From Mytilus californianus (lineage: Eukaryota): DNA of 64,000 nt. Under the pieces are notes generated by a model that saw only the letters and a program-made list of their open reading frames with translations, searched no databases and was not told the origin of the DNA. The translations under genes and the position numbers were made by a program. The stretch spans positions 53,568,001-53,632,000 of the forward strand of contig NW_026262582.1 in NCBI RefSeq assembly GCF_021869535.1, in the 5' to 3' direction. Positions 16,870 through 56,040 of this stretch are shown here, one piece after another; the stretch's first letter is position 1; every line of letters begins with the position of its first letter.

Positions 16870-16901
<32 letters not shown>

Positions 16902-18987: not shown

Positions 18988-19293
18988 CTTTCTGTTCCCG
19001 GCAGTAAAACTGTTCCGTCTCAGGAGATGGTTCGCTGGCTCCTTCGTCATTGACAGCTCTCACTCTGATACGATATGGAATATCTTCAAACAAGTTATTA
19101 ATTCTGTACTTTGTGTCTGCTATTGGTACTTTGTTAATTGGCATCCATGTTCTACCGGCAACATCTTGACGTTCTAACATGTAACCAATGATTGGTGAAC
19201 CTCCATCATGTTCTGGTGGTTGCCATGACAACTCAACAAATTTGGGTCCAAGTGCTGTGATTTCTGGTGCACTAGGTGGTGCTCCTGGACAAT
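18988..19293 (-). CDS. Exon: Fn3-array domain 46
   Basis: 306 nt; CPGAPPSAPEIT...CREQK. Confidence 0.9.
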
Positions 19294-19595
19294 CTAAGAA
19301 GACAAACAAATTGTATCACAAAAACTTTTAAAACATTTCATAAACATATTTTAATTCCCAGTAAATTCTACATTATTCTTTTTTTCCTACATGTATACAA
19401 ACTTTTAAACAGATTTCATAACTTCACACATTATTAATCTACAGTTCATTTCAATATTACCAAGGTTCTGTTTTAGTCAGAATCTTCATTTAAATACTTA
19501 TGTGAGAGGGGGGATTAACTTGGGATTCACTTGGAGAATTACAATGCTACTGTCTCACTCAAAATTGTGAATGTAATAGTTTATTTTAACATTAC

Positions 19596-19895
19596 CTTTT
19601 CTTCCTTTGAGTTCTACTGGTTTCTTTAATTCAGCTGGACTACTGACACCAGTTGAATTTTCTGCAAACACACGGAAAAAGAATGTGCCTCCTTCTGGTA
19701 AATCACTAATATGATGGCTCTTGATAAGAGGAGGTACGCGAGTAACACGTTCCCAGTGTTCACTGTCAGGTGTACGTTTCTCTATCGTGTAACCAGTAAG
19801 TCCTTTCTTTCCAGAATCTGGGGCTTCCCAGGTTAAAGTCAAAGAGTCCTTAGTTACATCTTTCACTCTTAATGATGTTGGAGGTGATGGTAGCT
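19596..19895 (-). CDS. Exon: Fn3-array domain 45
   Basis: 300 nt; LPSPPTSLRV...LKGRK. Confidence 0.9.
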
Positions 19896-20180
19896 CTATA
19901 AAATAAAATTTTCAGTCAATTTATTGAGTAATAAAATTAGTCACAATAATTAAAATCAAATATTGGTTTTACAACTAACAATCTTAATTAAGAAATTCAT
20001 GAGTTTAATGAAAATGTATTTACTTGAAAATATTTCTAGTAATTAACCTACCATCAATAGAAAAAGATTCTAAAATTTAACATCTTAAATCAGAAAATAT
20101 GAATCCAGCTGTTTACACCATTTAGTTGATAGAAACCAAAGAGTCGACGTTAGGGTTAAATCAATTGTTTGAATACATAC

Positions 20181-20486
20181 CCATAACTTTCTTGGGAGCA
20201 ACCATTAGGTCCGACTCTAATGGTTGACTTCTTCCATAACGGTTTTCAGCATACACTCTGAAAGCATAGTCTTTATTCTCTGTTAAACCAGTCACTGTGT
20301 AGTCTGTAGCAGTTCCTCTGGTGTTTGCAACATGGAACCAGGTGTGTCTGGTACCTTCACGTTTCTCTATAGAATATGATGTGACAGGTGATCCACCATC
20401 AGTTGTAGGAGGCTTCCAGTCCAAGGTCACACTGTCCTTGGTAAGGGGTTTAACCTTCAATGGACCTTTGGGTTGACCTGGTGGTC
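20181..20486 (-). CDS. Exon: Fn3-array domain 44
   Basis: 306 nt; GPPGQPKGP...PKKVM. Confidence 0.9.
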
Positions 20487-20641
20487 CTGAAAATCAAAAG
20501 TAAATGTAAAGCATCAAGGTGGTGAAGTCTTGGACATTATTTCTGATCTCCATATTTTGTTTTTGTAATAAATAACATTACTGATACTCAAAATTTAAAT
20601 GCAAAAAGTAAAATGAAAACAATTGAAATGTGATAACATAC

Positions 20642-20947
20642 CATATTTACTCTTTGGAGCAATTGCTTGGTCATTTTCCAAAGCAGGTCCAATTCCAGCC
20701 TCATTTTCAGCCATGACACGGAAATAGTAATCTTTCTTTTCTATCAGGTTGTCAACATCTGCAGACAGTGTATCTGGTGGAAGTCTGGCAACTCTAAGCC
20801 ATCTTGGAAGTTGAGCTTCACTTTTTTCAACAATGTAAGCTGTTAAATTTGATCCACCATCTTTTTCTGGTGGTTGCCATGATAACTTAACATGATCTTC
20901 TGTTATATCTGATACTCCAAGTGGTCCTTTTGGTTTAGATGGTTTTG
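20642..20947 (-). CDS. Exon: Fn3-array domain 43 (A); absent from the ORF track
   Basis: 306 nt; KPSKPKGPLGVSDITEDHVKLSWQPPEKDGGSNLTAY...PKSKY. Confidence 0.88.
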
Positions 20948-21379: not shown

Positions 21380-21682
21380 CAATGACTTTCTTTGGTTGTA
21401 TAATAGCCTTTATTTCAGCAGGTTCTCCTACACCCACTGAGTTCTTTGCCTTGACTCTGAACATGTATTCATTATCTGTTAACAGATGTTTGGCTTTGTA
21501 TATATGTACTGTACTTCCAACATCCTTGACCTTAGTAAAGTCGCCAAATTTGTCATCTTTCTGTTCAATGATGTAACCATTGACCATAGCACCACCGTCA
21601 GATTTTGGTTTCTTCCAGCGGATTGTGATGGAGTCTTTTTCAATAGCCATGGTTTCTAATTTCTCAGGTGGTGATGGACGTT
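21380..21682 (-). CDS. Exon: Fn3-array domain 42 (D-like)
   Basis: 303 nt; ERPSPPEKL...PKKVI. Confidence 0.9.
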
Positions 21683-21888
21683 CTATAAAATATGAAATAG
21701 GGTCATATTATTTATAACTGAGAGCAAAGTATGGATATTTAATACCATCTCATTCAACCTGTGTCATTTACAAAAGTTCTGACCATGGTAAAAAATATTA
21801 TAAGTAATATGTTACTATGAGTCATATCATTCCTTTATTTTATCTGCTAAATTAAAAACGAAATTATTTTGAAAAAAAGACTACATAC

Positions 21889-22191
21889 CCAGTGGTCTTT
21901 CTGGAACAGCTGGTTTGTCAATGACAGCAGGTTCACTCAATCCTTCAGCATTTTCTGCATAAACACGGAAGATATATCCTCGTCCCTCCAGTAGATTTTT
22001 GATAGTATGCCATGTGACATCAGGTTCTACCCTGGTTACTCTGATCCACTGAGATCTGCCTGGTTCCTTCCTTTCTATTGGATAACCAATGATTGGAGCG
22101 CCACCATTAGATTCAGGTGGAGACCATTCTAAGGTCACACTGTCTTCAGTGACCTCTGTTACCTCAAGGTCTTTTGGTACTGATGGTACAT
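21889..22191 (-). CDS. Exon: Fn3-array domain 41 (B)
   Basis: 303 nt; DVPSVPKDL...AENAEG...PERPL. Confidence 0.9.
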
Positions 22192-22598
22192 CTTAAAAGT
22201 GAAAACATAAGTAGTTACTACTTAAAACAAATTTATAGACTGAATGTGTATATGTATAATTTTAAATTTAACAACATAATTCATATATTGCATTTCTACC
22301 TAATATGAAGAAGAATTCAGACCTAAATTTATTTTGGATTTTTTTTTCATTTGTTTGGATCAAGTGTCAGTTTTCACTTTTTATATCAATCATATTGTAG
22401 TCAGTCTTATTGCTCAGGAAAACCAAAGTATGTGGGGAAAATCTCAGCACACTCACACTACTACACAAGTGGGTGATCTAGTTCACCTTACCATAATTAC
22501 AAATGGCTAGAACTTACTCAGCTTGGGTTACTATGTTGCTTAATTGTACAAATAACTAGTAAAATCTGAATTAAAAGTTATCTAGCATTCTCCCTTAC

Positions 22599-22904
22599 CT
22601 ATATCACTCTTAGCAATTACTGGTTCTGGTAGTTCTATTGGTTCACTAGCTCCAAGTTTGTTTTCAGCGTAAACTCTAAAGTTATATTCCCGTCCTCGGG
22701 TGAGTCCAGTCACTGTGTAATCAGTGACATCTGGTGTCAGTCGTGTAGCTCTCGTCCAACCTCCTACTTTGTTGTCAAACTTTTCTATGATGTATCCTGT
22801 TAATGGACTACCACCATCATATTCAGGTGGTTGCCATGACAATGAAATTGAATCTTTCTTGATATCATAGGCTTTAAGAGGTCCTTTGGGAGCATCTGGT
22901 GTTT
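22599..22904 (-). CDS. Exon: Fn3-array domain 40 (A)
   Basis: 306 nt; ETPDAPKGP...AKSDI. Confidence 0.9.
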
Positions 22905-23361: not shown

Positions 23362-23664
23362 CTAAAGGTCTCATTGGTCTTATTGATTTGTCCAAGTTGG
23401 TAGGACGACCTTGACCAATGTCATTTACAGCACTGATACGGAACATGTAATCAACACCTTCTTCTAGATCTTGTATTGTTTTCTGACTGACTTTGGATGG
23501 TACATCAGCTACTACTGCCCATTTTCCAGTTCTTCCATCCTTGGCCTCTATGATGTATTTCTTGACAGGGGAGCCACCGTCATCATTGGGCGCACTCCAA
23601 GTCAAAGTGACAGAGTCTGGAGTAACATTACTAGCCTTGATTTTGCCTGGACTGCCTGGTTTCA
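23362..23664 (-). CDS. Exon: Fn3-array domain 39 (D-like)
   Basis: 303 nt; VKPGSPGKI...PMRPL. Confidence 0.9.
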
Positions 23665-24140
23665 CTGAAAATAAAATATTATGTGTCATTTCATTTTGCA
23701 GGTTCAAATGTAAATAAATAAATGACTGTTAGGTGACCTTCAATCATTCATATGTTATAAAAAGGATTTTTTTTAGCCAAGTATTGATTCAAAGTCTCTT
23801 ATTAAAGATCATGATTAATGGAGGAAATTAATTTGACACAATTATAAACCTTAATCCAACTAAAAAGGTCAGAACATGTCTTCTCAGTGATTTTATCATT
23901 CATAGACATGTATTCATATTGAGAACCACAAAAATAGAATTGAAAGTAATTTGTACTCAATTTTTCACGATTTTTACTCATAAAATTTTTATGCCTAGAG
24001 TTGCAGATCTATTTGAGAAGAATGGCAACCATTAGAGTAGAGCTCCTTTGATATTTACCAGTATAATTTTTTTTAAGTTTATACAACAAAAACTTTAACC
24101 CATATCTATTTTTCTACAATCCAAGGGAGATTATCATTAC

Positions 24141-24446
24141 CTGGAGCTCTTCTTGGTGTTACAGGTTCTGTAGTCTCCAATGGCTGACTTCTTCCTTCAT
24201 CGTTTTCCGCTACAACTCTGAACATGTAATCATTGCCCTCATTCAACTTATCAAGGGTCAATGTATGTATTGTTGGACGTACTGTGTCCACTTGGTACCA
24301 ATTGTTTCTCTTCAAGTCACGTTGTTCTACCACATAACGTTTGATAGGTTTACCGCCGTCACTTTTTGGTTGTTTCCAACTGAGTTCAGCAGACCTGGCA
24401 GTGACATTAGATACTTTAAGTGGTCCTTCAGGCACATCTGGTGGAT
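24141..24446 (-). CDS. Exon: Fn3-array domain 38 (B)
   Basis: 306 nt; DPPDVPEGP...AENDEG...PRRAP. Confidence 0.9.
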
Positions 24447-24765
24447 CTGCAAGAAAAAAAATTGTAAAATGAACATCTTGCTTTTTCATGGCTTACTAAC
24501 ATTACTGTTCACATCCCTTATTAGAAATCTGGTTGATAATTGTCTCATTGGCCCCATCTTCCTATTTTTGTATTGGTTTATCCTGAAACAATGGGAAACC
24601 ACTTGCATTTTCAATCATAAACTGACCTTGGATCATTTTGACTTTTTCGGCTACAAAAACAGTTTACCCCTACTGCTTTCTTTATTTGAAGTAAATCTAA
24701 GAACTTGACGATTAATTGCTTTGTTTTGACATGATATTACCTTAGTGTTGAAAGTGATAACTTAC

Positions 24766-25071
24766 TGAATGGATTCTTTGGAATCACTGGTTCTTGTCCT
24801 TCCAATGGTTCAGATAAACCAGCTTTGTTCTCTGATTTCACACGGACAAAGTATTCTGTCTTCTCTATTAAGTGTGTCATGGTGTATCTAGTTGTAGTAG
24901 ATTTAATCTTTTCAAGGTAGCTCCAGGTGGTCTTGGTTTTCTCTCTCTTCTCCACAACATAGTGTGTGACAGGGGAACCACCATCATCTTCACTTGGTTT
25001 CCAAGATACTGTAACAGATGACCTTTGGATGTCCTTGAACTCTAATGGTCCAACAGGAGGTGAAGGTGGTT
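24766..25071 (-). CDS. Exon: Fn3-array domain 37 (A)
   Basis: 306 nt; EPPSPPVGP...PKNPF. Confidence 0.9.
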
Positions 25072-25364
25072 CTAAAAATAGTTTCATAAAATTTTTCATC
25101 ATTATGAACACTAAAAATTCCTGATATCAAATTTCAACATGATACAGGATGGAAAAATGGATGGACAGGCACACAGACTGGAAAATTTAATAGCTCCCGA
25201 TATAGTAGGCAGGGCATAAAAATGTGACTGAAAATTTCTACCATATCATCATACATACAACAGATCAACTCATTTATGCTAAAATTGGAATGCAAAACTT
25301 ATTATTATTTAGAAGATTTCTGTCATTTTACAGTAAAAAGTCATCTGATGATAAACAAACTTAC

Positions 25365-25670
25365 TGATTGGTTGTTTTGGTGAGTAAGTTTTGTCAGTCT
25401 CAGCCATATCACCTTTACCAACTTCATTTTCAGCAGCCACACCAATGTAATATTTATTCTTAGGTTCCAGCTTAAGAATGGTGAAGTAATTTTTGAATGT
25501 ATCAACAGTTGCTACATTTATCCATTTGTTGTCTGTAGATTCTGATTTGATGTAAATTTGATATTTCTTAACTCTGGATCCACCATCTTTACTAGGTGGT
25601 CGCCATTCAATGGTGATTTCATTTTCATCAATTTTGGTGACTTTGAGGTCTTTGGGTGGACCAGGACGAT
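25365..25670 (-). CDS. Exon: Fn3-array domain 36 (D)
   Basis: 306 nt; DRPGPPKDL...IGVAAENEVG...PKQPI. Confidence 0.9.
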
Positions 25671-25914
25671 CTATAAAACAGTTTTGACAGATCAATATTC
25701 TAATGTATCTGAAATCTTGTTTCTATTTACTTTTATAATAAATTTGCTTTAATAAAGACCGTTAAATGTTTTTCTTGTTTCATTAGAATATTGCACATAA
25801 TTGTCAAGAACTTGATTTAAGATTACTCATCAATATATGTATTATAAATAATAAATTTCAGTTAATTTTAATACACTAAAAGTTTCACATATTACAACAT
25901 GTAATGATTCTTAC

Positions 25915-26220
25915 CAAGTTTCTGTTTTGGAGTAACTGTGTCATCTCCATTTAATGGTGGACTTTCTCCCTCAGCATTGATTGCCTTGATTCTAAAGATA
26001 TATTCATTATCCACCACTAATTTTTTGGCAGTGAATTTGGTAGTTGTTGCATCTACAGTTCCATGCTTTCCCCACATTGAACGTCTGGATTCTCTGATCT
26101 CTATGGTGTAGTTAGTTATCGGAGTTCCTCCATCAGATTTTGAAGGTTTCCATGTCAATTCTACAGAATTTTCTGTTAGGTTGGAGAACTTCAAAGGTCC
26201 TTCAGGAGCTAATGGCTTAT
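25915..26220 (-). CDS. Exon: Fn3-array domain 35 (B)
   Basis: 306 nt; DKPLAPEGP...AINAEG...PKQKL. Confidence 0.9.
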
Positions 26221-26593
26221 CTGTTGTTTAAATTAGTTCATTGTTTAAGATTTTCAGGCATGCAAGATTTGGAGGGATTTCATGCCACACTTATCCTTCA
26301 TCGAAGACTGTAACTTGATATATATCAAATGCATATTTTCTGTGATTTTTTCTTGTTGTTGGGTTTGTTTTCATTCATATTTATAACTGATTTATGTATG
26401 CAAAGAAAAATTATTCAAACTGAATAAACCTTAAAAGCTAAAAAAAAGAAGTATTTTTTTAATTCATTGTTTATATATTGTGTTCCCATATTTATTTCAG
26501 TTAACAAAAGTAAATCCTAAAAAAACAAAATGAAGTGTTTATCATACAAAAGTCGTTATCTGAAAGTTGCTGTATATAAAATTTGCTTCTTAC

Positions 26594-26899
26594 CAAATGG
26601 ACTCTTCATCAAAATTGGTTTAGGCATTTCTAGAGCATCACTTTGTCCATGTTTGTTAATAGCAAACACTCGGAAGAAAAATTCTTTTCCTTCATCCAGA
26701 TTTTTCACAAGAAGTTTCAAAGTGCTGCCATCTGTTTTTTCAACTCTAGACCACATAGATCTCTGAACATCTCTCTTCTCAATAAGATATTCTGTGATTG
26801 GTGAACCACCATCTTCTTGTGGGGGTTGCCATGACAACTCCACAGAGTCACGTGACAATATTTTTCCAATCAAAGGATGTGTTGGTGGGCCAGGAGGAC
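26594..26899 (-). CDS. Exon: Fn3-array domain 34 (A)
   Basis: 306 nt; GPPGPPTHP...MKSPF. Confidence 0.9.
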
Positions 26900-27332
26900 C
26901 TGAAACAAATTTAAAACTTATGAGGTCTAAAAAGGAAAAAAAATATAAAAAGAATTTAACAAGAAAATAGCAGAATGGTCCTTCCCTAATGAAGTTGATC
27001 AAGACGGTCGTAACTAATTGCATGATAATTAAAAAAAAAATATTTTTATTGGTAAATATTTCAAAAGATAAAGGATTATTTCATCTTTTCTGCTTGATTA
27101 TGGAAATTTTTATGGAAACATGTTTGATATAAATGGAAATTTAGATCTGTTACAGAAACTTCATGATATATTAAAGATTTATCAAAAGTCATATATACTG
27201 AGAAAACTTTTGCAGTTCCTTGATTTGAAGAGGCAGGTAACAGGTTAAAGTTTTGTCAAGAAAAATCTTAAATATCTATGTCTGATCATAATTTATAACA
27301 TGAATACCAAAGAAAAAAAGAAAGCTACCAAC

Positions 27333-27632
27333 CTTTTGGTTTAGTTGGAGTTACTTCCCCTGATTCAAGTGGTTTACTATCTCCAACCTTGTTTATGGCT
27401 ATAACTCTGAATCTATAAGTTTGTTCAGCTGTCAAATTACTGACTTTTGTCTTAGTAGTTTGACCATCACATATAGTGACCTCTGTCCAGATCTTGCTGT
27501 CAATGGTCAGTTCAAGTCTGTATCCAGTGATTGGAGCTCCTCCATTGTTTCTTGGTGGTGACCACTCTAATGTGACACCAGTTTCAACAATGTGAGTGAA
27601 TTTGATTGGTCCAACTGGCATATCTGGCACAA
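27333..27632 (-). CDS. Exon: Fn3-array domain 33 (C)
   Basis: 300 nt; VPDMPVGPIKF...PTKPK. Confidence 0.88.
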
Positions 27633-28143
27633 CTGTTTCAAAAAAGAGCCAAATGATAACCATTTAATATATAATCATGCTAACAATTACAAGATGTGTA
27701 GGATGTCAACATTAAATCTAACAAAAATTCATAACTACATATCTTAAAATCTAAAAGAATTTCCATAATATTTAAAAGACTTTACAGATAACTCTATTCA
27801 TATACTAGTAACTATAAATCTGCCAATCTCACTACTTTCCAAGATGGTGTAACAGGCACATGCTCCGCTTTATATATCACTGTCACAGGTCTCTTATTTT
27901 GACCCCTTTATAGTGAGTATAATATTTTATACCCTGCTGGACTATACAGAAATATGTATTATAAAAACTCTGAGAAGCTGAAGGGTAATGAATACATATT
28001 CATTATTTACTGCCTTTATTATTCTTACTCTGATTTATACAATGCATTTTCACAGAATCATTTTTTCCCCTGCCAAATATTTAATTTCCATAAAATTTAA
28101 AAAGAATTGTATTTTATTCAAAATAATTAAACTGACAACTTAC

Positions 28144-28446
28144 TTGGTTGTTTTTTAAGTTGTATAACTTGTGAAAGTTCAACAGGTTTGCTGGAGCCCT
28201 CGTCATTTTCTGCTGACAATCTGAAATAGTAGTCCACACCCTCACGTAGTCCTTCAACAGTAAACTCTGTTGTTTGGGCCTTGATTTTTCTCTCTTTGAC
28301 CCATGGTCCAAATTTCTTTTCCTTCCTCTCAAGGAAGTAGATCTTGATTGGTAATCCACCATCTGATTCAGGTGCTTTCCATGTCAAAGTAACTGTTGTT
28401 GCTGTAGAATCTTTGACACTGAAATCTCTTGGTGCTGATGGTACAG
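28144..28446 (-). CDS. Exon: Fn3-array domain 32 (B)
   Basis: 303 nt; AVPSAPRDF...AENDEG...LKKQP. Confidence 0.9.
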
Positions 28447-28897
28447 CTAGAAATACAAAATGTCACAATTTATATTTATTTTTCAATGTTCTGCCAGTTG
28501 TTTATTTTCCACATATGATTTGTTCGAAAAATCTTATATTTAATTCTTGACTTTAGAATTGTTATCTAAAAGTTTGTAAGAAGGTATTATCTAATTTTCT
28601 CTGTTCACACAAACTTTGGAAACTTAAAATTACAAAATTAAAGCAACAACCACTCCCAATTCCATGCCACTCACTGTCTATTATGTAAATGGAAAATCAA
28701 ATGATACAGTAAATTCATTTTACGGTTTACAGGTAAAAATGGGAGATTAATGCAATTGCAAAAATTTTGTGAAGGATATTCGCAACTGAAATTATAAATA
28801 AAAGTTTTTATTATTGCAAACCTGATACTGTAGCTTTTTTGCATTAAAAAAAATATTGCAATAATTTCTGAATTTACAGTATATGAATGAAATTAGA

Positions 28898-29172
28898 GTG
28901 TATGTGTTTCAGTATCAAGAGAACAGGTGTATGTGTTTCAGTATCAAGAGAACAGGTGTATGTGTTTCAGTATCAAGAGAACAGGTGTATGTGTTTCAGT
29001 ATCAAGAGAACAGGTGTATGTGTTTCAGTATCGAGAGAACAGGTGTATGTGTTTCAGTATCAAGAGAACAGGTGTATGTGTTTCAGTATCAAGAGTACAG
29101 GTGTATGTGTTTCAGTATCAAGAGAACAGGTGTATTTGTTTCAGTGTTTCATTATCAAGAGAACAGGTGTAT
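28898..29172. repeat. 29-bp minisatellite x~9
   Basis: GTGTATGTGTTTCAGTATCAAGAGAACAG repeated; explains the spurious plus-strand ORFs at 28883-29226. Confidence 0.95.
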
Positions 29173-29259
29173 GATAAAAATTATTACGAACCAATTAATC
29201 AAAGATTTAAAATAAGACCCAGATAAAATAAGGAGGAAATACAAAAAAACTCCACTTAC

Positions 29260-29565
29260 AGTATGGACTCTTGGCAGTGAAGGAGGTCTCAGCATCTAAA
29301 GGTTTAGATGGTCCAACTTCATTGACGGCCTTGACCTGTACAAAGTAATCCTGTCCCTCTTTAAGTCCAGTCAATTCAAAGTTTGTTACATTAGGTTTAG
29401 TTTTTCCTGCCTCAGTGTAGGTGGATTTTAATCCCTCACGTTTTTCTATGATGTAGCCAGTAATCGGGGAGCCACCATCTTTCTCACTGGGTTGCCATGA
29501 TAACTTGGCTTTTGTTTTGTCAATGTCTGATATTTCTAGTGGACCAACTGGTAGTGATGGTGCCT
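29260..29565 (-). CDS. Exon: Fn3-array domain 31 (A)
   Basis: 306 nt; EAPSLPVGP...AKSPY. Confidence 0.9.
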
Positions 29566-29900
29566 CTGTAATGTTCACAATATCATCATGTAATGACATG
29601 CTATAATTCCTTACAAAAAACTTATGTCAAAATTCAATTCAATTTTTTGCTCGAAATTTGACTGACTATAAAATGTTTAAGGTCTAAGATTCAAGTCATG
29701 TTTTTATACTTAAATGTCATGTACAATTTCAATAAGAATTATTGTGTTAATATAATGAACTTTAATTGGTTTTGATTACTGTTTGTGATTTCTATATTTA
29801 ATCACTTTTTTTCTTGTTACTGAATAGATAAAATTTGAAAATGATGATGTTGTTTTGACAATATATCCCTTATCTATTTCTCTCAGCCATTTGAGCTTAC

Positions 29901-30203
29901 CTAATGGTTTCTGTATTTTGACAGAAGTGTCAGTATCACATCTCTCACTCACTCCTACGTCATTCTCAGCTGTGACACCAAAAACATAGGTCACTTCATA
30001 TTCAAGGTCAGTGATTACATGGTTGGTCTTGTACTGTTCAAGTTTTGTGACCTTGACCCACTCTTCAGTCATCTCTACTCTCTTCCAGACTTGGTAACGA
30101 CGGATCTTAGAGCCGCCATCACTAACAGGAGGAGACCACTCAAGGTGGGCAGTATTCTTGCTGACTTTTGTGACCTTGACATTTTGTGGTGGTGAGGGTG
30201 GAC
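29901..30203 (-). CDS. Exon: Fn3-array domain 30 (D)
   Basis: 303 nt; GPPSPPQNVKV...FGVTAENDVG...IQKPL. Confidence 0.9.
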
Positions 30204-35357: not shown

Positions 35358-35417
35358 TCATAGTAAAAAAACAAAAAATTATATATTGCTTAAATATCAA
35401 TTTAAAAAAAAACCTAC

Positions 35418-44884: not shown

Positions 44885-45178
44885 CTGAATAAAAACATTT
44901 TTGGTCACAATTTTTGCTAGACAATACAGTGTGGTTATTAAATATTATGCAACAACCAAAGCTGATTTAAACCGTATGCACTTTGCAAAAATGAAAATTA
45001 AAGGAAACTATTTTACAAATATATTTATTTTCTATGCAGAGAAGTTTTAACTCGAATTGTTAATAAGTATTTGATAAATATATATAGATAGATATTATTA
45101 TTCATTTTAATGTTATTACATAAACTTTTGATCAATTTTTCAATTATACATATCAAAATAAAAAAAAAAAGTGTTTAC

Positions 45179-45478
45179 CAAAAGCACTCTTAGGAATAAC
45201 AGTTTCTGAAGTCAGTGGTTCAGAAACTCCTATTTCATTAACTGCCATTACTCTGAACATGTATTCTGCATTGGTCTTTAATCTCTGCACACAGTATGTT
45301 ATATCTGGTTTGATCTTGTCAACCTTTGACCAGGTTCGATCTCTTACTTCTTTCATTTCTAACTGGTATCCTGTGATTGGTGATCCTCCATCATCCTTTG
45401 GTGGTTTCCATGACAATATGACTGATGTCTTGGTTAGATCAGAGAATTCAATAGGTCCTTGTGGTGCTGATGGTTTTT
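45179..45478 (-). CDS. Exon: Fn3-array domain 10 (A)
   Basis: 300 nt; EKPSAPQGP...PKSAF. Confidence 0.9.
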
Positions 45479-45868: not shown

Positions 45869-46171
45869 CTGGCTTCTTGTGTAGAGTCACAGGAGACTCT
45901 AGCTCTGCAAGTTGTCCTGGGCCAATTTTGTTTTCAGCAGAAACTGCAAATTGGTAAGGTTTGTCTGTTCTAAGATTTTTGGCTGTGTAGGATGTGTCAA
46001 ATGATCCAACACTCCCAATCTTTTTCCAGTCTTCAGAATCATCCTCTTTCATGAATATCTGGTATCCAGTGACCTTTGATCCACCAATGTCCTTTGGTGC
46101 TTTCCATTCCAAGGTCACCTTGTCAGTGTTCTTAGTCTTGATCTTCAAATTTTCTGGTGCTTGTGGTGCCT
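45869..46171 (-). CDS. Exon: Fn3-array domain 9 (D)
   Basis: 303 nt; EAPQAPENL...FAVSAENKIG...HKKP. Confidence 0.9.
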
Positions 46172-46589
46172 CTGCAAATAAACCCTAGTTTTTTTATTTC
46201 TTGTTTTCACTTGGCTCCAAATTTCATTCAAAAAATGGAGAAAAAAAGAAATCAAAAGTATTTTACTGCACTCTTAATAGATTGAAAGCAGGCCAATAAT
46301 TAACAATATTGACAAATGTATTTCAAATTTATTTCCATAAACAATTACCAGTACATCAGTATATCTTTTACACTAATGATATTTTCATGGGCAGAGAAAA
46401 TGTTGCATTTTAGAAGGGATTTCTTTTGGGGGAGGAGTTCAATTAAAAGAAATTATTTCATTTATGTACATTGAAAGGAGTTCTTTTTCCTAATGGCAAT
46501 CTAATGTTGACCTCTAGTTGTCTTTTTGTGTTAATGTGTTGACGTCTCATTGATTTATGCCCAAACATCTCCATTAGATTCATACTGAT

Positions 46590-46927
46590 AAGTAGGAGGA
46601 GGGTTGAGCGCTCACAAACATGTTTAACCCCGCCGCATTCTTTATGTGCCTGTCCCAAGTCAGGAGCCTATAGTTCAGTGGTTGTCGTTGGTTTATGTCT
46701 GTCATATTTGTTTTTCGTTAATTGTTTTGTTATAAATTAGGCTGTTAGTTTTCTCAATTGAATTGTTTCATATTTTTCATGTCAGGGCCTTTTATAGCCG
46801 ACTATACGGTATGGGTTTTTGTCATTGTTGAAGGCTGTAGGGTTGCCTATAATTGCTTACATCCACTTTATTTGAACATTGATGGATAGTTGTCTCATCA
46901 TCAATCATACCTCATCTCCTTATTTTT
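46590..46927. mobile_element. Related SINE-like repeat (opposite orientation)
   Basis: CCTGTCCCAAGTCAGGAG ... GATAGTTGTCTCAT...CATACCTCATCTCCTTATTTTT; same family motifs as 51947, reversed. Confidence 0.7.
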
Positions 46928-46995
46928 ATAATGTTACTGTAACATAAATGAGATTGTAAACATGGTAAAATACAATATCATAAAGGATATCTGAC

Positions 46996-47301
46996 CTAGT
47001 TGTTTTTGAGGTCTGACAGATTTGACTGATTCCAATGGAGCTCCAGGTCCTTCTTCATTGACAGCTGAAACCCTGAAGTAATAGTCACCACCTTCCAAAA
47101 GTTTGTCAGCAATAAAGATTGTCTTGTCTGCACTGACATCTCCACATTTGGACCATGTTGTACGTTTAGAGTCTTTGGCCTCTATGATATAATTAGATAT
47201 TGGTAGACCACCATCCTTTGTTGGCGGTCTCCATGAAAGTGTGACTGAATCCTTGGTTATGTCAGAGAATTCTAATGGTCCTACTGGTTTTCCTGGTTTG
47301 T
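46996..47301 (-). CDS. Exon: Fn3-array domain 8 (B); absent from the ORF track
   Basis: 306 nt; DKPGKPVGPLEFSDITKDSVTLSWRPP...AVNEEG...PQKQL. Confidence 0.88.
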
Positions 47302-47786
47302 CTATTGAAAATATTATTAATTTTTCATGTTTATTTGTTTAATTTTGTTATATGATTCTCCAATTTGGAGATAAACATTGGATTTCAGGAAAGCTAACAA
47401 ATCTCCAGCTCAAAGAAAAATATATTGAAACAAATGTTTAATGCATTATTTACACTAAGAATGAATGAAATCATTAGAATCTGTTATTATGATTATTTGT
47501 TCTAATAAAAATTAAAAAATTAAAAAAGATATTAATTGCATACCAAATTTTAAGAAATACTTCTGGATACACCATAAAAATTTACAACCAGACAGATTGT
47601 TGCATATTTTTCAAATTGAGCGTTTTCTTTTACTGGAACAAGTACAAGAATTCTCTACCACCAAAAGACAAAATATACGAGGTAGAAATGTTAAAGACAG
47701 CACAAATTTGATTTAAAAATCTTGAAATGACTTGAACTAAATATCTAAACATATTGGATTCATTACAAATGAATGTTGTAACATAC

Positions 47787-48092
47787 CAAATTCACTCTTA
47801 GGAACAATTATTTTGTCTGTCTCTAGAGCTGGACTTCTTCCAAGTTTGTTTTCTGCTGTCACATGGAACATGTAATCTGTTCCTTCTGTCAAGTTCTTTA
47901 CTGTGTATGTTGTGTCATCAGGACTGATCTTATCACAGAGGGACCAGGTTGTACGTCTACCTTCCTTCTTTTCTATGATGTAGCCAGTCAGTGGAGATCC
48001 ACCATCTTTAGATGGAGGTTTCCATGACAACTTGACTGAAGTTTTAGTGATTTCTGATGTATCTAATGGTCCTACTGGTTTTTCTGGTGGTC
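47787..48092 (-). CDS. Exon: Fn3-array domain 7 (A)
   Basis: 306 nt; GPPEKPVGP...PKSEF. Confidence 0.9.
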
Positions 48093-48367: not shown

Positions 48368-48670
48368 CTGCAGGTTTCTTGGGAACTACTGTAGATTCAA
48401 GTTGACACATATCACCAAGACCTACAGAGTTCTCAGCTGCAACAGCAAATGTGTACTCAACTCCATCCTTTAGTTTGGCAACCTTGTAGCTATTATCAAA
48501 TGGTTTTAATGTAGCTACAGTGGTCCAGTCATCTGATGGTCCCTCCTTCATCTTGACAACATATCCTTTAATTTTTTCCCCTCCAGTTGTTGTGGGTGGT
48601 GTCCAGTCCAATGTAACATAGTCTGGACCTACTTTGGCAGTTGTCAGCTTTTCTGGTGGGCCTGGTTTTT
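48368..48670 (-). CDS. Exon: Fn3-array domain 6 (D)
   Basis: 303 nt; EKPGPPEKL...FAVAAENSVG...PKKPA. Confidence 0.9.
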
Positions 48671-49050
48671 CTGTAGAACAATTAATACATTGTAAAACAA
48701 AAGTCTGTTCATCTTTTTGTTTTAAAATTTTATTTTTACTGAAGGGAATGTTTTATGAGAAGGAAATTTTACAAGTTTGAGACACCTAGCTGATCAAACC
48801 AACTTTCCAGTGTTTAGTGCCTGTACAAAGTCAGAAATATGACATTCATTACTTCATTTGTTCCAATTTCTCAATATCTCTGGACTTCAACTTCTAATGT
48901 TCTCTTTGAATAAAACAATTTTAAAATACATACATTATTAGTTTTTGAGTCATGGATTACAACATTTGAAACTGATTTAGCAATAGTCTGTGTCTTATAT
49001 TCCTTCCTATTCATATGCTTAAAAGCCAAAGTTTACCTAAAATTACATCA

Positions 49051-49246
49051 TACTGTGGATTCATTTATTTTCATGGATTGAGGAAATCTTGCATCTTCGT
49101 GGATATTTGATTTCGTGGCTTTGTCAAAGTCTACATACAACATAATAGTAAGTTTGTACTTCAATGAACATTTAAATTCGTGGTTCACTTGTACCAACGA
49201 AATCCACGAAAATTGGTATCTCATGAATAATAATGAATCCACAGTA
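49051..49246. mobile_element. Tc1/mariner-type MITE
   Basis: TA|CTGTGGATTCATT ... AATGAATCCACAG|TA: inverted ends with TA TSD. Confidence 0.85.
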
Positions 49247-49272
49247 TACCATTTAATCTAGTTTTAACCTAC

Positions 49273-49578
49273 CAATAACTTTTCTTGGTTTGGCCATATC
49301 AGCTGATTCCAATGGGGATCCAGATCCTTCACTGTTGATGGCTGTGACCCGGAAGTAATAATCTTGACCTTCCTTTAGATCTTTAACATTAAACTTGAAA
49401 GAATTTCCATCTACAGTTCCAGCCTTTGTCCATGTTGACCTATTGGCTGGTCTATATTCAATCTGGTATTTTTCAATTGGAGCACCACCATCTTGTTCAG
49501 GTGCCTGCCATTCAATGTCAGCAGAACTCTCAGTGACATTACTGATTGATATCGGTCCAACTGGTGCTGATGGTTTGG
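49273..49578 (-). CDS. Exon: Fn3-array domain 5 (B)
   Basis: 306 nt; AKPSAPVGP...AINSEG...PRKVI. Confidence 0.9.
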
Positions 49579-49850
49579 CTGTAACAGAAAACATTTCCCA
49601 TGTAAATTTTAAAGAGTTGAGAAATTCATTTACAGGGTAATAACTAACACATGTTTTACATCTTTAACAAATTAATGTTCATTTTTATAACGTCCACAAA
49701 CAAACTGACTATTTCAAATCATTAGATTACATTACAATGAATCCATTACAGTAGAATTTTGATAATGTTATACTGTTATTATATAATATCCACACTTTCA
49801 ATTTCCATATTGAAAAGTATAGGATTTTACAGAACAGTGGATAAACTTAC

Positions 49851-50156
49851 AGAATGGACTCTTTGGCAATACAGATTTTTCAGCTTCTAATGGCTCCCCA
49901 AGTCCAGATTTATTTTCAGCACGTACGCGGAACATATATTCTGTTCCTTCTTGTAATTTGTCTACTTTAAGCTGATTGGTTTCACCATCAACTTTTTGGA
50001 CAGGTGTCCATGTTTTGCGTTTTTTGTCTTGCTTTTCAATGACATAGGAAGTGATTGGACTTCCACCATCTTCCTTTGGAGGTGACCAGTGAAGTGTGAC
50101 TGAATCTTTTCTGACATCAGTCATTTCAAGTGGTCCCATTGGTTGTGATGGTTTGC
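49851..50156 (-). CDS. Exon: Fn3-array domain 4 (A)
   Basis: 306 nt; GKPSQPMGP...PKSPF. Confidence 0.9.
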
Positions 50157-50375: not shown

Positions 50376-50669
50376 CAATTGGTTTCTTTGGTATAACTAC
50401 ATCAGATACCAAGAGCTCTCCTTCACCGACGGCATTGATTGCTGCTACACGGAAGTAATATTTCTGTCCATCTTTAAGACCCTTGGCTGTATATTTGGTA
50501 GTATCAGAAATATCAAGTGGTGTCCATGTTTTACCATCTTCTGATATCTCAAGTTTGTAAGATGTAACTGGTGAGCCTCCATCTTTCTTTGGAGGAGACC
50601 AGTTTAAGGTCACTTCATCACCAAGTACATTGGTGAATTTGATTGGTCCCACTGGCTTAGCTGGACAAG
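50376..50669 (-). CDS. Exon: Fn3-array domain 3 (class C)
   Basis: 294 nt; CPAKPVGPIKF...EISEDGKTW...PKKPI. Confidence 0.88.
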
Positions 50670-51270
50670 CTATGAAATGTATAAATAAGTATATAAATGT
50701 GTCATGAATTTTTGTCAGTAAATCATTATAGATTTGGGCTTAAAAATGATTTTCTATGTTACATAAAAAGCTGGTATAAAACAAGAAGTGTTTAATATGA
50801 CAGTTGTTCCATCATTTGATATGCCAAATATCATAACACAAGCTGCTAAGTATTCAAAACTATTTGTTCTGTACTAATTATCATGGACTTCTAAGGTAAA
50901 GGTGAATTAACAAACTCAAATAAATGCAGAATTTTTTAAACAATAAAAACAAAGTTTCCACAAAATAGAAATTTTTCTTGATCTATGAAATTGGCACCAA
51001 TACAAATAAATGTATCCACATTATTTTTCACTTTCTATTTTTGCCAATTCCCTGGAGTTCAGTACATTTGTTATTTCACACTCCTTGTACAGGAACCAAT
51101 AAGCAAAGGCTTAGTTTGTTGATTTTAAAACGTTAATTCTCTTTGAATTATCCACAAATGAGAATAATTCAAGCATTTTCATAAATTATAACCTCACTAA
51201 AATTTTGAAAATTTCTATTTATGAATACTCGATAGATTCACAATGTATTAATTACAATTTTTAAACTTAC

Positions 51271-51576
51271 TTGGTGCTTGTTTTGGTTTGATTTCTGTGT
51301 CAGTAACAAGAGGCTCACTTGCTCCTTCAGCATTAACAGCTAAAACTCTAAACTGGTATGGAGTACCTTCTATCAACTTCGGAACAACAAAACTCAAAGT
51401 TTTGTCATCAACACTTCCAACCTTAGTCCAAGATAAACGTCTCTTGTCATATTTCTCAATAATGTATTCTTTGATTGGTGAGCCTCCATCTAATTTTGAT
51501 GGTTGCCATGACAATTTAACACTATCAGCTGTGATGTCAGAAGCAGTCAATGGTCCCTCTGGTTTTGATGGTTTTC
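51271..51576 (-). CDS. Exon: Fn3-array domain 2 (class B)
   Basis: 306 nt; GKPSKPEGP...AVNAEG...PKQAP. Confidence 0.9.
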
Positions 51577-51946
51577 CTAAAGTCATTTTATAGTTTTTTT
51601 ATTGCAGAATAATTTTAAATTGAACCAATAAAATGAAGAGTAAAGGTTCTCAATTTGCATGCTTATTATTCTAATACTGCCTACTATTGTAACCCTATTG
51701 TCAGACTTTTTTTCCTGTATCTGTTTTTGTGTGTTTTGTTTGTAGTTAAAATTAAGGTATGCCACAGTCTATACCCTCTTCTGAAATTACCATGCAAGAC
51801 TGCGCCAAATTAATGTGTTGTGCATTGTATTTCTTTTCAAAAAAACATTGGTACACAAGCCATGTTCTTATTTTCATTATTTTCTATATTTCCAAATAAC
51901 TGATTAGTCACCAAAATAGCTTTTTAATTTTGTCTCTTAATATTAG

Positions 51947-52245
51947 ATATAAGAAGATGTAGTATGAGTGCCAATGAGACAACTCTCCATCCAAGTCACA
52001 ATTTGTAAAAGTAAACCATTATAGGTCAAAGTATGGCCTTCAACACAGAGCCTTGGCTCACACCGAACAGCATGCTGTAAAGGGCCCCAAAAATGACTAG
52101 TGTAAAACCATTCAAACAGGAAAACCAATGGTCTAATTTATATAAAAAACATGAAACGAGAAACACTTATGAACCACATCAACAAAAGACAACCACTGAA
52201 CATCACGTTCCTGACTTAGGACAGGTGCAAACAAATGCAGCATTC
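51947..52245. mobile_element. SINE-like interspersed repeat
   Basis: Shares ~150 bp with the 36578 copy; continues to CCTGACTTAGGACAGG. Confidence 0.85.
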
Positions 52246-53406
52246 TTCGTTGGACAATCGCAATACTCCATTTTTTGAAAATTTTATTGTTTTTAGAAAC
52301 AGTACAAAAATAAAGAATAAATGAGTTGATGTAGTCAAATTATAATTTTTTAATCCAAATTCTAATCAAGACATTTTAATAGCAAGCATCGAATAAATTT
52401 GGTGTGGCCAAATAATAACTAAATACTTTTTTTTAGGGTTTTAATGATCATTTTATACTTACATTGATAACCAAAAATATTAAGACAAATGTTATAGAAG
52501 AACTCTAAACTAAGATTCAAGTACTCATCCAAACCCCAAAAAGTTTATATTAAATCATAAAGATACCAGTCAGTGCTTACAACATCAGTGTCGGGAGTAA
52601 TCTTCATGGGTATGCTCCAGACAAAATGTTTGAGAGGCAAAGTACATGGAAAATATTGGAGCTGTCAAAACCAGAAAGGAAACAAACAAAAAAGTCATAT
52701 TAAACCATCTGAAGTCAATTTTACAACTGGGATTTGCAACCTTCTAGCACAATATGATTTAGAAAGTGAAAATTTACAATGAAATGTTATGGTTTTAGAA
52801 ATGAATTTTTAAGAATAAGAAGGACATTTAAATAAAGGACTGGTGACAAGTGATGGCATTAGTGAACATGGACTATTACACTAAATATAAATATCCTTTG
52901 GATGACATGAGTTTCTTGCAAGCTATAACCAACAAGGTATTATAATTATTTGACTTAGGAGTTATTCTTTCAATCATGGATGTTGATGCAGTGTAAAGCA
53001 ATCACCAATCAATCAATCAATCAATTCAATCATGGATTTTATTTTCACTGTCAACCAAACATATAAAATCCTGTGTTTCATACAAAATTAGGAAAAGAAG
53101 AAAATTTTGTGAAATTTCTGTGTCTAGCACATGATTCCAAGTCATTGACCCCCCCTACCAAATTCTATAATTGGAAATAATCCAAATCTAAATAACATCT
53201 TATTAGCTATAAATTTATAAAGGCATAACTAATAATTGTTTGCTCCCTTATCATTTGGTCTCTGCTGGATAATTGTCTCATTTGCTATAATACCACATCT
53301 CCTTATTTTTATATGCAATGTATAACTTTTTGTTTGTACATCTTTTGTCTGGAGAGTCCAATGTTGGTTGTTGTGTGGTCTGTTATACTTTCAAATATTG
53401 TTTTTA

Positions 53407-53598
53407 AGTTCATGGTATCCTTTTTTATGGTTCATTGTATCTTCTTTTTAGTTCATTGTATCCTTTTTTTAGTTCATGGTATCCTTTTTTTAGTTCATGG
53501 TATCCTTTTTTATGGTTCATTGTATCTTCTTTTTAGTTCATGGTATCCTTTTTTATAGTTCATGGTATCCTCTTTTTAGTTCGTTGTATCATTTTTTT
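53407..53598. repeat. ~21-23-bp minisatellite x~9
   Basis: AGTTCATGGTATCCTTTTTTT variants; explains the ORFs at 53313 and 53497. Confidence 0.9.
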
Positions 53599-55734
53599 AT
53601 ACATTTTATTATAGCCCTTTTTTGTGAAGTCACAGAATTCAAAGCACTCCAATGTTTCATGCAAAATCTTGACAATCAACAAACAGCATGCTTTCAAACT
53701 AACACAAAACAATTAAAATGTTATACTTTATTTTATTTAACATTTTATTGATTAAAATGTATACAATTCAACATTAATATAGTAATTAATCTTAAAAATT
53801 TCACATAACAACTTCATTTAAACCATTCATTTGAATATTCAAAAACCCATGCACAAGATCTCTTGGCCAAGATTATCTTCAAACAATTTATCAGAACAAT
53901 ATACTTAGCACTGGAATGATATGAAAAAACAAATTGAGCACTTAAAACACAATCAAGTTAAGAAAATTAAATATGGTAATGGTATCTTAGTAAAATAAAT
54001 GAAACATGTAAAACAAATTTTGTATGGGGAAAAGATTGTTATTTCTTAAGGCATACAATTTTGTTCTCAAGAATTAATTTTTGAGAAAAAAAACCCACTT
54101 CTTTTACACTAAGAACAATACAAAATTTCTTGTTTCAACCCTTATATGAATGGTTTGAAAAAATGAACAAAACTTTGTCATGCATTTGATCAAGTATACA
54201 ATATATTAGTAACTAGTAACATTCTATTAATTAACAATATCTAACTTCAATTAACTAGTAACTAACTACTATTACTAAAACATATCACATTCAGCATGGA
54301 GATTCACAACCTTATACATTTTGATTACTAAAAATTCATAATATTACTTCTGATTATAAAAAAAATATTTCAACGAAAGGAATGTTCAACAATTTTCAGC
54401 AGTTAATGATAAAAATATAATAAAAATATATAGTATTCATAATTATAATATAACACATGGTTACAAAAAAATTAAAACGTCATTTATGTAAAAATCACAT
54501 TATGATTGATATGTAAATAAATCTATTCATCACATATTTTGCTATGAGTATGATATTCAAAATTAAAAAGAAATTAAAAACTTGAATTGTTGATTAAAAT
54601 GGACCAAATGGATAATGTTGTGGACCATGTTCTTAGATGAGAACATGATTCCGAAAAATGCCCATTTTAAATTCGACATAATGAAAGTTTATCATTTAAT
54701 AATGTAATGTCTAACAGGGATGAATTTTGAAAGGAATGCATTTTATTCCATATGAAATGTAATGTGTTATATCAAATTTATAATGGCAACCTTGTTTGTT
54801 TATTTTCCAGTCATGGACTATAAGTCTATTTTCTTATTATGCACCTTTTTTATACAATTGTAAATGCAATAAATTGTCCTTTAATAGGTTGCTATGAGAT
54901 CCATACCTAAACACCACAGACAGATTAAGGACTTTCTTTAACTTAAGGATCATATATATAAGGTCATACATGTACTACATGAACCAACTCTTCTAACCTT
55001 TACCTTATCTCTTATCCTAAACCTAATTTTAACACTAAGCTAGAGATAAAATGTTCTAATTAAAAACTATCAAAATTAAAAAAAAATGTGGGTCCCTATG
55101 TAAAAGAATGCCCATGGGTGACACAGTGAAACCAATTGTCAAGTTGAAAATAATAGGATAGTTTATACATTTGGACGGGTTATGTTATTGAAAATCATTC
55201 AAATAGGTTTATATTTGATTCACACACATAAGGCACATGCTTCGATACTTATGAATATGTAAACAATTTAATTAAGATAATCATGGTCAAATTTTGGCTC
55301 TGATTTTAAATCATGATATGTCAAATTATGTGGTCTTCTTTCACAGTATTTTTGTTCTCAGATGTAATAGAATTGAGACTTCTATCAATTGTTCACAAAT
55401 CTCAATTAACTCCAAACTCTATAACTAAACTCTTTAGAAGAGTAACTTTTGAGAGCTTAAACAGTGAAAAAAGACCACATTTATCAATGGCATAACAGTA
55501 TGTAATTTAGGTTATAGAAATTGAAAACATTTATTTACATTTTTGCCATTTCTCGTCACCGATAAAAAGGAGCAAGTAATTTGTGACCAAAATGTCAAGC
55601 TCCATAAATTACACACTGATATATGTTTAAAATTAACAATAAAACAAAAAGCATTCACAATTTTTTTCAAGACATCATGCTGTTAATATTCAACATCAAA
55701 CTTTTATCAATTCGGGTTGCATATCCAAACCTAC

Positions 55735-56040
55735 CAAATGGACTCTTTGGAATAACTGGTTCGGATGTCTCCAAAGGTTTGGAAACTCCAATGTCATTTT
55801 CAGCAGTAACTCTAAACATGTATTGTTTTCCATCCATTAATCTACTTGGTGTAATAGTTGTGGTTGGAGCTTTAACAGATCCCACTTTTGTCCATTGTGA
55901 ACGGTTTTGTTCACGCATGTCTACATTGTATTGTTTAATGTCTGATCCACCATCATCTTTTGGTGGTTGCCATGACAGTGTGACACTATCTTTGAGAAGG
56001 TCTGTGACCTCTATTGGTCCTTCAGGGGGACCAGGGATGT
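55735..56040 (-). CDS. Exon: Fn3-array domain 1 (class A)
   Basis: 306 nt, phase 1-1; DIPGPPEGP...PKSPF. Confidence 0.9.

Follow-up and report, generated by a model that had tools for sequence, protein, structure and literature searches.

An Ig-free array of 46 Fn3 domains in a giant mussel muscle kinase gene is a three-domain super-repeat

The window analyzed here, a stretch of 64,000 nucleotides of Mytilus californianus DNA (RefSeq assembly GCF_021869535.1, contig NW_026262582.1, forward-strand positions 53,568,001 to 53,632,000), is the middle of a giant muscle kinase gene of the titin/twitchin family. On its minus strand, at 18988-56040, lie exons for exactly 46 consecutive fibronectin type III (Fn3) domains. 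This array is a real three-domain super-repeat, consisting of 15 trimers plus one domain, in which a class-A domain is followed by a class-B domain and then by one of two kinds of third domain. A first-pass annotation of the same DNA had proposed such a super-repeat, and our analysis bears it out: the outer coordinates match exactly, and the count of 15 trimers plus one follows from the splice-site boundaries. We think it likely that this Ig-free A-B-C rod of a giant mussel kinase derives from a module of the family, and that it serves as a thick-filament rod with a repeat of ~12 nm.

Mean pairwise identity between domains was 0.40-0.48 at all lags that are multiples of three, out to lag 30, and 0.35-0.37 at other lags, with medians alike. 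Recent copies (d17-d25, domains being numbered d1 to d46 in coding order) were dropped before the period was tested, leaving a highest identity of 62%. Period three gave z = 11.6 in this reduced array, and none of 5000 shuffles of domain order scored as high (0/5000). Periods 2, 4, 5, 7, 8, 10 and 11 were at or below zero (z = -0.3 for period 7 and -2.0 for period 11), and periods 6, 9 and 12 were mere echoes of period 3. The period-3 signal was strongest once the near-copies had been removed. On a maximum-likelihood tree, position labels required 7 changes, compared to 22.2 when the labels were shuffled; the tree and the identity peaks at lag 3 thus agree with the expectation of the first-pass annotation that domains would group by position modulo three. 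Leave-one-out class profiles placed 30 of 37 domains correctly, nearly all errors falling in subclass C1 of the third position (d3, d12, d33) or in d42-d46. Of 102 alignment columns, 15 were class-specific (p ≤ 0.01), against a chance expectation of about one. Neither net charge nor isoelectric point showed class periodicity.

Each class carries its own signature. The tail K-[S/T/N]-x-x ends 15/16 class-A domains and 0/30 others, with d46 (REQK) the exception, and the last tail residue is aromatic in 13/16 class-A domains and again in 0/30 others. At domains 1, 4, 7 ... 43 these tails read KSPF, KSPF, KSEF, KSAF, KSPY, KSKF, KSSY, KSPY, KTPE, KSPY, KSPY, KSPF, KNPF, KSDI and KSKY, which is letter for letter the list given in the annotation. 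N-x-E-G in the F-G hairpin, claimed for the domains at 3n+2, is indeed present in 13/15 class-B domains, as against 1/16 in class A and 0/15 in class C. Two classes had also been proposed for the third position, and these correspond to two well-supported clades. Class D (d6, d9, d15, d24, d30 and d36; support 99/95) starts one residue shorter and carries F(A/G)V(A/S/T)AEN, while class C1 (d3, d27 and d33; support 98/98) carries VGP(I/V)xF and has the recent copies d12, d18 and d21 beside it. Identity inside a class amounts to 0.43 in both A and B, 0.40 in C1 and 0.35 in D. What stands apart in each unit is the third domain, whose identity to A or B is just 0.34, compared to 0.40 between A and B. 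The pattern had been called hidden. The super-repeat itself stands, but it is less hidden than that, since its period is that of the twitchin Fn3-Fn3-Ig unit and the class-A tail is the usual linker of the family.

The array was delineated by combining stop-free stretches with a reading of splice sites, which gave 43 exons, 4671 residues and a mass of ~517 kDa. All array introns are in phase 1, with clear polypyrimidine/AG acceptors and GT donors; 40 exons encode one domain each and three encode two. The domains measure 98-106 residues, mostly 100-102, and leave no spare linker. Pfam fn3 matched each of the six array exons tested (E = 1e-13 to 1e-30). P2, P5, W23, G30, N81 and G84 are invariant across all 46 domains, which therefore have the titin-type Fn3 motifs (PxxP start, DGG B-C loop, AxNxxG F-G hairpin). 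A tblastn search found no further or decayed Fn3 exon in any array intron, the 4.2-kb first one included. Nor is there an Ig domain inside the array: 46/46 consecutive domains align as Fn3, the introns contain no other coding exon, and in d30-d38 RNA links one Fn3 exon straight to the next. The array and its units are as follows.

Whole array, 18988-56040, minus strand: 46 Fn3 domains in 43 phase-1 exons, Ig-free
Trimer 1, 50376-56040, minus strand: A 55735-56040, B 51271-51576, C1 50376-50669; 4158-bp intron after d1
Trimer 2, 48368-50156, minus strand: A 49851-50156, B 49273-49578, D 48368-48670
Trimer 3, 45869-48092, minus strand: A 47787-48092, B 46996-47301, D 45869-46171
Trimer 4, 44082-45478, minus strand: A 45179-45478, B 44579-44884, C1-like 44082-44380 (in one exon with the next A)
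Trimer 5, 42591-44081, minus strand: A 43775-44081, B 43191-43496, D 42591-42893
Trimer 6, 40156-42195, minus strand: A 41890-42195, B 40918-41223, C1-like 40156-40454; B and C1-like are recent copies of d11 and d12
Trimer 7, 38555-40155, minus strand: A 39849-40155, B 39383-39688, C1-like 38555-38871; all three are recent copies, and the d21 tail is six residues longer
Trimer 8, 35418-38554, minus strand: A 38248-38554, B 37395-37700, D 35418-35720; recent copies of d13-d15
Trimer 9, 31994-33943, minus strand: A 33638-33943 (recent copy of d16, tail KTPE), B 32609-32914, C1 31994-32293
Trimer 10, 29901-31448, minus strand: A 31143-31448, B 30536-30841, D 29901-30203
Trimer 11, 27333-29565, minus strand: A 29260-29565, B 28144-28446, C1 27333-27632; exon joints seen in RNA
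Trimer 12, 25365-26899, minus strand: A 26594-26899, B 25915-26220, D 25365-25670; exon joints seen in RNA; collinear with Lingula domains 2-4
Trimer 13, 23362-25071, minus strand: A 24766-25071, B 24141-24446, third domain 23362-23664; collinear with Lingula domains 5-7 and Lottia domains 6-8
Trimer 14, 21380-22904, minus strand: A 22599-22904 (tail KSDI), B 21889-22191, third domain 21380-21682 (class not clear-cut); collinear with Lingula domains 8-10
Trimer 15, 19596-20947, minus strand: A 20642-20947, B 20181-20486 (lacks N-x-E-G), third domain 19596-19895 (class not clear-cut); collinear with Lingula domains 11-13
Domain 46, 18988-19293, minus strand: odd domain at an A position, without the class-A tail (REQK); pairs with Lingula domain 14

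Two details of the array sequence were recorded besides. The exon of d26 (32609-32914) has an apparently weak donor, GTGTTT, and a predicted 3' end (...LICHDA) unlike all other class-B tails. A 160-bp element, probably a dispersed repeat, occurs in two different array introns (36573-36735 and 51942-52101) with 91% identity.

The annotation further proposed that the two kinds of third domain take turns, often giving the order A-B-C-A-B-D. C1 and D do alternate at 8 of 9 steps (p ~0.04, from a runs count made by hand on the de-duplicated array), and the class-B subtype (AEN versus A[VI]N) is linked to whether C1 or D comes next (Fisher p = 0.048). Overall identity, however, is no better at lag 6 than at lag 3. 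Within each class, lags of 6k and 6k+3 give equal identity, and we therefore rejected period 6 as a global signal. The six-domain phase is also broken twice, at d6-d9 and d20-d21. Evidence for a loose six-domain unit is thus only suggestive: the alternation speaks for it, while the missing lag-6 excess and the two phase slips speak against it.

All recent copies lie within d11-d25, as blocks of six and three domains, d11-d16 recurring as d17-d20 and d21-d25 through one six-domain and one three-domain duplication. The exon DNA of these copies is 87-96% identical, and their introns no longer align. Across 33638-44895 this similarity ends within ~10 bp of the exon ends, as might result from old duplicates with homogenization limited to exons or from fast intron turnover. 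One copy, d21 (38555-38871), has six extra tail residues, reading AAPTSERPEKPEKPEGP where two sister copies have APSVPEKPEGP; we regard this as a small tandem duplication at the C-to-A joint. Recent growth in d11-d25 moved whole multiples of three domains, and the phase was kept in every event. Either selection or plain recombination between like domains might account for such conservation of phase.

We searched 1.84 billion representative proteins with a profile built from the 46 domains and listed the best 150 matches. Five of these best 150 contain Ig-free Fn3 runs in the same order: Lingula anatina XP_013419362.1, a Lottia gigantea model and three proteins from public read assemblies. P0002 and P0003 (both with the domain order of vertebrate titin), P0010 and P0015 were also among the 150 matches and were kept out of the comparisons. 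The Lingula protein, a fragment named 'twitchin-like', has 14 Fn3 domains followed by 103 residues without an Fn3 match, roughly as long as a single Ig domain. The fragment runs collinear with mussel d33-d46: the mean alignment score is 224 at offset 32 and 199 or less at every other offset. All in-phase offsets, save offset 29, beat all out-of-phase offsets, save offset 0, and 6 of the 14 mussel/Lingula orthologous pairs rank first among the 46 domains. The class-A tails of Lingula are VESPF, PKSPY, TKSPY, PKSPY and, last, ANQAP, so that KSPY stands at three of five class-A positions and the last domain lacks a class-A tail, as does mussel d46. The Lottia model matches d37-d41 with its domains 6-10.

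A joint tree of 84 domains from four proteins gave a similar picture. Position labels required 9 changes on this tree, compared to 39.9 for shuffled labels, and several domains paired across species: d43 with Lingula domain 11 (98), d46 with Lingula domain 14 (92) and d44 with Lingula domain 12 (83). Class-specific residues, namely K-S-P-[FY] in class A and N-x-E-G in class B, are kept at orthologous positions of mussel and Lingula, the domains overall being 35-55% identical. Given the collinearity of d33-d46 with Lingula and the grouping of classes across species, these sequence comparisons place the origin of the three classes, and of at least the C-terminal third of the array (the last 14 domains), before the mollusc-brachiopod split. 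An intronless relative was also seen (L001:1-16840, from Logan SRR8185553; 31% GC), with an open reading frame in which >3700 residues of I-set Ig domains precede Fn3-Fn3, an Ig-sized gap and an Fn3 triple. The frame continues through a second Ig-sized gap and 14 Fn3 domains with period three to a stop, after which come unrelated genes. Two shorter proteins, P0110 and P0143, are collinear with this relative. The oyster and scallop proteins described in PMC12063666 were not among the best 150 matches listed.

Expression was assessed over 6 kb of the window (24001-30000) using one stranded run of raw RNA reads and contigs from three other runs, all four from different studies; that the three contig runs derive from RNA is a guess only. 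All eight predicted joints of d30-d38 were recovered to the base, with minus-strand GT..AG, and the raw reads had the orientation that a gene on the minus strand should give. Two of the contig runs yielded contigs (10.7 and 11.7 kb) that hold the exons in order, while the third gave shorter contigs. No exon-skipping joint reached 10% of reads within 24001-30000. The array is thus transcribed as read, exon after exon, in the tested part (d30-d38). At about a dozen exonic sites in 24163-29275, 25-70% of raw RNA reads differ from the window, and at sites 26114 and 26207 all four runs do so. Alleles or strain differences are the simplest explanation, rather than editing. Also, the intron between d31 and d32 contains a tandem repeat (28865-29223; units of ~29 and 87 bp) that is open in three plus-strand frames. 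This repeat has an RNA signal of its own, opposite to the gene strand, with a read depth of 26.7 (first mate on the minus strand) and a contig depth of 288 in one run.

The RNA data bear on a further concern, namely that collapsed or mis-joined repeats in the assembly, or errors of annotation, mimic a regular array. Repeat-rich giant genes are often misassembled, and the exon copies in d11-d25 are similar enough (87-96%) to invite such errors. However, the exact RNA joints and the two long contigs rule out an assembly artefact for d30-d38. Moreover, all 43 exons keep phase 1 and an open frame, the period-3 signal gains rather than loses when near-copies are removed, and the Lingula protein is collinear with d33-d46. 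With these data in hand, an artefact is scarcely credible as the source of the pattern.

The annotation put the length of a trimer at 12-13 nm and suggested that each trimer registers with one level of myosin heads, spaced 14.3-14.5 nm apart. We predicted the structure of a Lingula trimer (P0020:380-685, equivalent to d37-d39) from an alignment of eleven units, with a mean predicted local distance difference test score (pLDDT) of 94.4 and a predicted template-modeling score (pTM) of 0.58. Over all three domains, the predicted trimer superimposes best on titin of the human cardiac thick filament (Z 20.0; root-mean-square deviation [rmsd] 4.2 Å over 300 residues) at chain residues 779-1081, which are an A-B-C triple. 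On the mouse thick filament the rmsd is 4.7 Å, and on the A84-A86 crystal structure it is 11 Å. In situ, 11 titin domains span ~43 nm on the cardiac thick filament (PMC10665226). Because the predicted trimer fits the in-situ titin triple, a spacing of 43 nm per 11 domains would give ~11.7 nm per trimer, or 3.9 nm per domain. The length proposed earlier was thus about right.

The same estimate argues against one trimer per crown. Such a register would need an axial rise of 4.8 nm per domain, and any path that is not straight shortens the rise further. Linker-free domains of 100-102 residues cannot provide this, and the mismatch, at the pitch of titin in situ, would come to ~42 nm over 15 trimers. 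The suggested check by structure prediction fits a titin-like pitch, with a trimer short of 14.5 nm, and we rejected the one-to-one register on geometry. In its favor, twitchin and projectin, which coat thick filaments, also have a unit of three domains, and a length of 12-13 nm is comparable to 14.5 nm. Paramyosin filaments do have a 14.5-nm repeat (PMC12040844). Taking both sides together, we consider a single-crown ruler highly improbable.

A register of higher order would be arithmetically compatible with the estimated pitch. Eighteen domains, or three six-domain units, could match the 72.5-nm paramyosin repeat (4.03 nm per domain), or 15 domains could match four 14.5-nm levels (58 nm; 3.87 nm per domain). 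Both paramyosin periods, 72.5 nm and 14.5 nm, are given in PMC12040844, and titin sets a precedent for a non-integer ratio with its 11 domains per three crowns (PMC10665226). The loose six-domain order also points this way. However, these matches are pure arithmetic, lag 6 has no excess over lag 3, and the six-domain phase is broken at d6-d9 and d20-d21, making such a register quite improbable. Equally doubtful, in our view, is the broader proposal that lophotrochozoans have an Ig-free, all-Fn3 thick-filament template whose three- and six-domain units are tuned to the paramyosin lattice (e.g. 18 domains per 72.5 nm) rather than to single crowns. If true, this would be a second, independently built solution to the task performed by the vertebrate 11-domain repeat of titin.

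Work on titin suggests how the class signatures might act. In the A84-A86 structure, the F-G hairpin (AxNxxG) lies at the domain's N-terminal pole, against the incoming linker (PMC10665226). In the mussel array, a K-x-P-aromatic tail is followed by a domain with N-x-E-G in all 7 of 7 scorable pairs. The class-A K-S-P-[FY] tail may therefore pack on the class-B F-G hairpin, forming one specific, stiff, hydrophobic A-to-B joint. The unit would then comprise a stiff A-B pair plus a more divergent third domain, with two lysine/proline-rich joints. In this model, the rod would lie along the thick filament, like the A-band part of titin and like twitchin, and would present the same three surfaces and junctions every ~12 nm, with any register to the 14.5-nm myosin repeat being only of higher order.

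Several observations weigh against a functional A-B-C rod of this kind. The three-class pattern fades in d42-d46, the arrangement of the trimer is predicted with moderate confidence (pTM 0.58), and the folded trimer is that of Lingula rather than mussel. N-x-E-G is absent from the second Fn3 of twitchin and titin, so the pairing of tail and hairpin would be lineage-specific. The contact between the two is modeled on titin, and association with thick filaments, while most likely, is argued from family membership. The C-to-A joint tolerates the six-residue insertion in d21, which speaks against a strict ruler. Unequal crossing-over between like domains would preserve the period without selection. 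In titin, types A, B and C show no structural difference, and their features have been called possible evolutionary remnants (PMC10665226).

The last three of these points would also fit the view that the period merely records tandem copying of a three-domain block, with no periodic function, each domain being maintained just for fold and solubility, and with class features as leftovers; so would the ongoing block duplication evident from the recent copies and the lack of charge periodicity. Arguing the other way, class-specific residues have been kept at orthologous positions of mussel and Lingula while the domains diverged to 35-55% identity. The 15 class-specific columns and the grouping of classes across species likewise count against a relic, as does the 7/7 association of K-x-P-aromatic tails with N-x-E-G, since both signatures would, by analogy with titin, lie at one joint. 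On balance, we consider a relic of duplication unlikely and favor the Ig-free A-B-C rod. Even as a mere record of duplication, the array would still be a well-dated example of in-phase array growth.

Super-repeats let titin act as the thick-filament template of vertebrates, and the mussel array bears on how invertebrate thick filaments are patterned, especially the long, paramyosin-rich ones of molluscs. Super-repeats of titin-family proteins are already known, and the Ig-free super-repeat described here is new as a variant. It offers a clean case, with 15 near-perfect units of one fold and three conserved identities, which is expressed in the tested part and of which at least the C-terminal third is kept in a brachiopod. 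The array supplies defined reagents (single classes, trimers and six-domain units) for testing binding and spacing. It also shows that Fn3 can replace Ig at the third place of the twitchin unit, and likewise for the Ig domains of titin units.

The DNA of the window is AT-rich and eukaryotic, and it contains one very large minus-strand gene. Outside the array, this gene has the following parts.

Upstream part of the same gene, 57379-63380, minus strand: Fn3 (tail KNPW), Fn3, Ig exons, Fn3 (KSPF), Fn3 (KNQF), Fn3 (KEPI), Ig exons, then the array
Downstream part of the same gene, 9311-13139, minus strand: Ig exons, one Fn3 (11888-12268), kinase exons

In all, the window holds 53 Fn3 domains: the 46 of the array, six further Fn3 exons and one Fn3 cut by the window edge. 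Pfam I-set and fn3 match exons within the array and on either side of it, as in the long Fn3/I-set arrays of the titin/twitchin family. Between the array and the Ig exons that precede the kinase, 5.8 kb (13140-18987) contain no coding exon. The one kinase exon tested (10099-10368) has its nearest solved relatives among twitchin kinases (1koa, 3uto and 1kob; E = 1e-22 to 5e-21), with titin kinase at 3e-14. The gene thus has an Fn3-kinase-Ig module near its C-terminus with a kinase related to those of twitchin, titin and MLCK, as judged from that exon.

The catch twitchin of Mytilus, a protein of 530 kDa, combines 24 Ig domains with 15 Fn3 domains (Funabara et al. 2003, cited in PMC12040844). 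Because the window alone has 53 Fn3 domains, and the array alone amounts to ~517 kDa, the gene described here is distinct from and larger than catch twitchin; domain counts and size set it apart as a second member of the family. Our literature search turned up no account of an Ig-free Fn3 array or of a three-domain order within it, which is weak evidence, subscription journals being mostly uncovered, and a 2025 paper on connectin evolution does not discuss the mussel array. The oyster and scallop homologues whose domain maps appear in PMC12063666 probably belong to the same gene family as the mussel array. The text consulted calls their features 'more mixed' and describes neither an Ig-free array nor a three-domain order.

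Ig-free Fn3 runs also occur in titin/twitchin-like proteins of hemichordates, with 18 domains in Saccoglossus XP_006823012.1 (P0006) and 15 in Ptychodera XP_070534198.1 (P0028). Unlike those of the mussel array, most of their domains share one tail (mostly AK[PA]PY in Saccoglossus, AVTAC in Ptychodera), and they show no A-B-C order. This points to a period of one, with the Ptychodera copies probably young. In both chains, Fn3-Fn3-Ig units come after the Ig-free run.

Comparison with A-band titin reveals both likenesses and differences. Titin Fn3 domains are of types A, B and C, arranged -AC-ABC(-ABC), i.e. -AC-ABC in the D-zone and -AC-ABC-ABC in the C-zone (Fleming et al. 2023, PMC10665226). 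The titin A-to-B linker, [N/Y]PF, is rather stiff, and the B-to-C linker, [D]PI, is more flexible (PMC10665226). Mussel Fn3 domains likewise come in three positional types, and the mussel K-S-P-[FY] tail matches the titin A-to-B linker, AKNPF of human titin A84 aligning with KSPF. In both proteins, growth has been by block duplication, with the youngest copies in the middle, and the nearest solved relatives of all three class profiles are A-band chains of titin. By contrast, the mussel array is Ig-free, and its unit is three (loosely six) domains, not seven or 11. We also tried a one-to-one match of the mussel classes with titin types A, B and C. Taking just the best stretch in solved chains could not tell the types apart, as all three profiles match A84 best, so per-domain scores were used. 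The class-A profile gave 84-94 bits on titin type A, compared to 65-77 on other types, and the class-B profile also preferred type A. Titin type A is the best-scoring type for each of mussel A, B and C1, and D matches type C, but weakly. With type profiles from amphioxus, classes A, B and C1 again all preferred type A. These scores reject a one-to-one match.

Closest in plan are the [Fn3-Fn3-Ig]n arrays of twitchin and projectin (C. elegans UNC-22, insect projectin/bent, Mytilus catch twitchin), which share with the mussel array a period of three domains and a first Fn3 ending in a K-x-P-aromatic linker. First-Fn3 tails of the form AK[ND]P[YFW] were seen in Anopheles twitchin/projectin, in a Gordionus protein and in twitchin-like proteins of a crinoid (Anneissia) and a hemichordate (Ptychodera), and in titin-like triples of amphioxus the first Fn3 ends in AKxP[FY]. 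The twitchin likeness extends to the rest of the mussel gene, whose kinase near the C-terminus is nearest to twitchin kinases by the exon tested, and which upstream of the array has mixed Fn3/Ig units, with Fn3 pairs and triples split by Ig exons. We propose that the mussel unit derives from the Fn3-Fn3-(Ig) module of the family, class A being the 'first Fn3' type. A copy of the second Fn3 (class B-like) would then have filled the third place instead of an Ig, and three- and six-domain blocks would have been duplicated in tandem. Replacement of the Ig by a copy of the second Fn3 is the simplest reading, because third-position domains sit with class B, and not with class A, on the joint tree. 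Two features distinguish the mussel array from twitchin and projectin: its second Fn3 carries N-x-E-G at a place mostly taken by N-x-A-G in twitchins and titins, and its third domain is an Fn3 rather than an Ig, for 15 units running.

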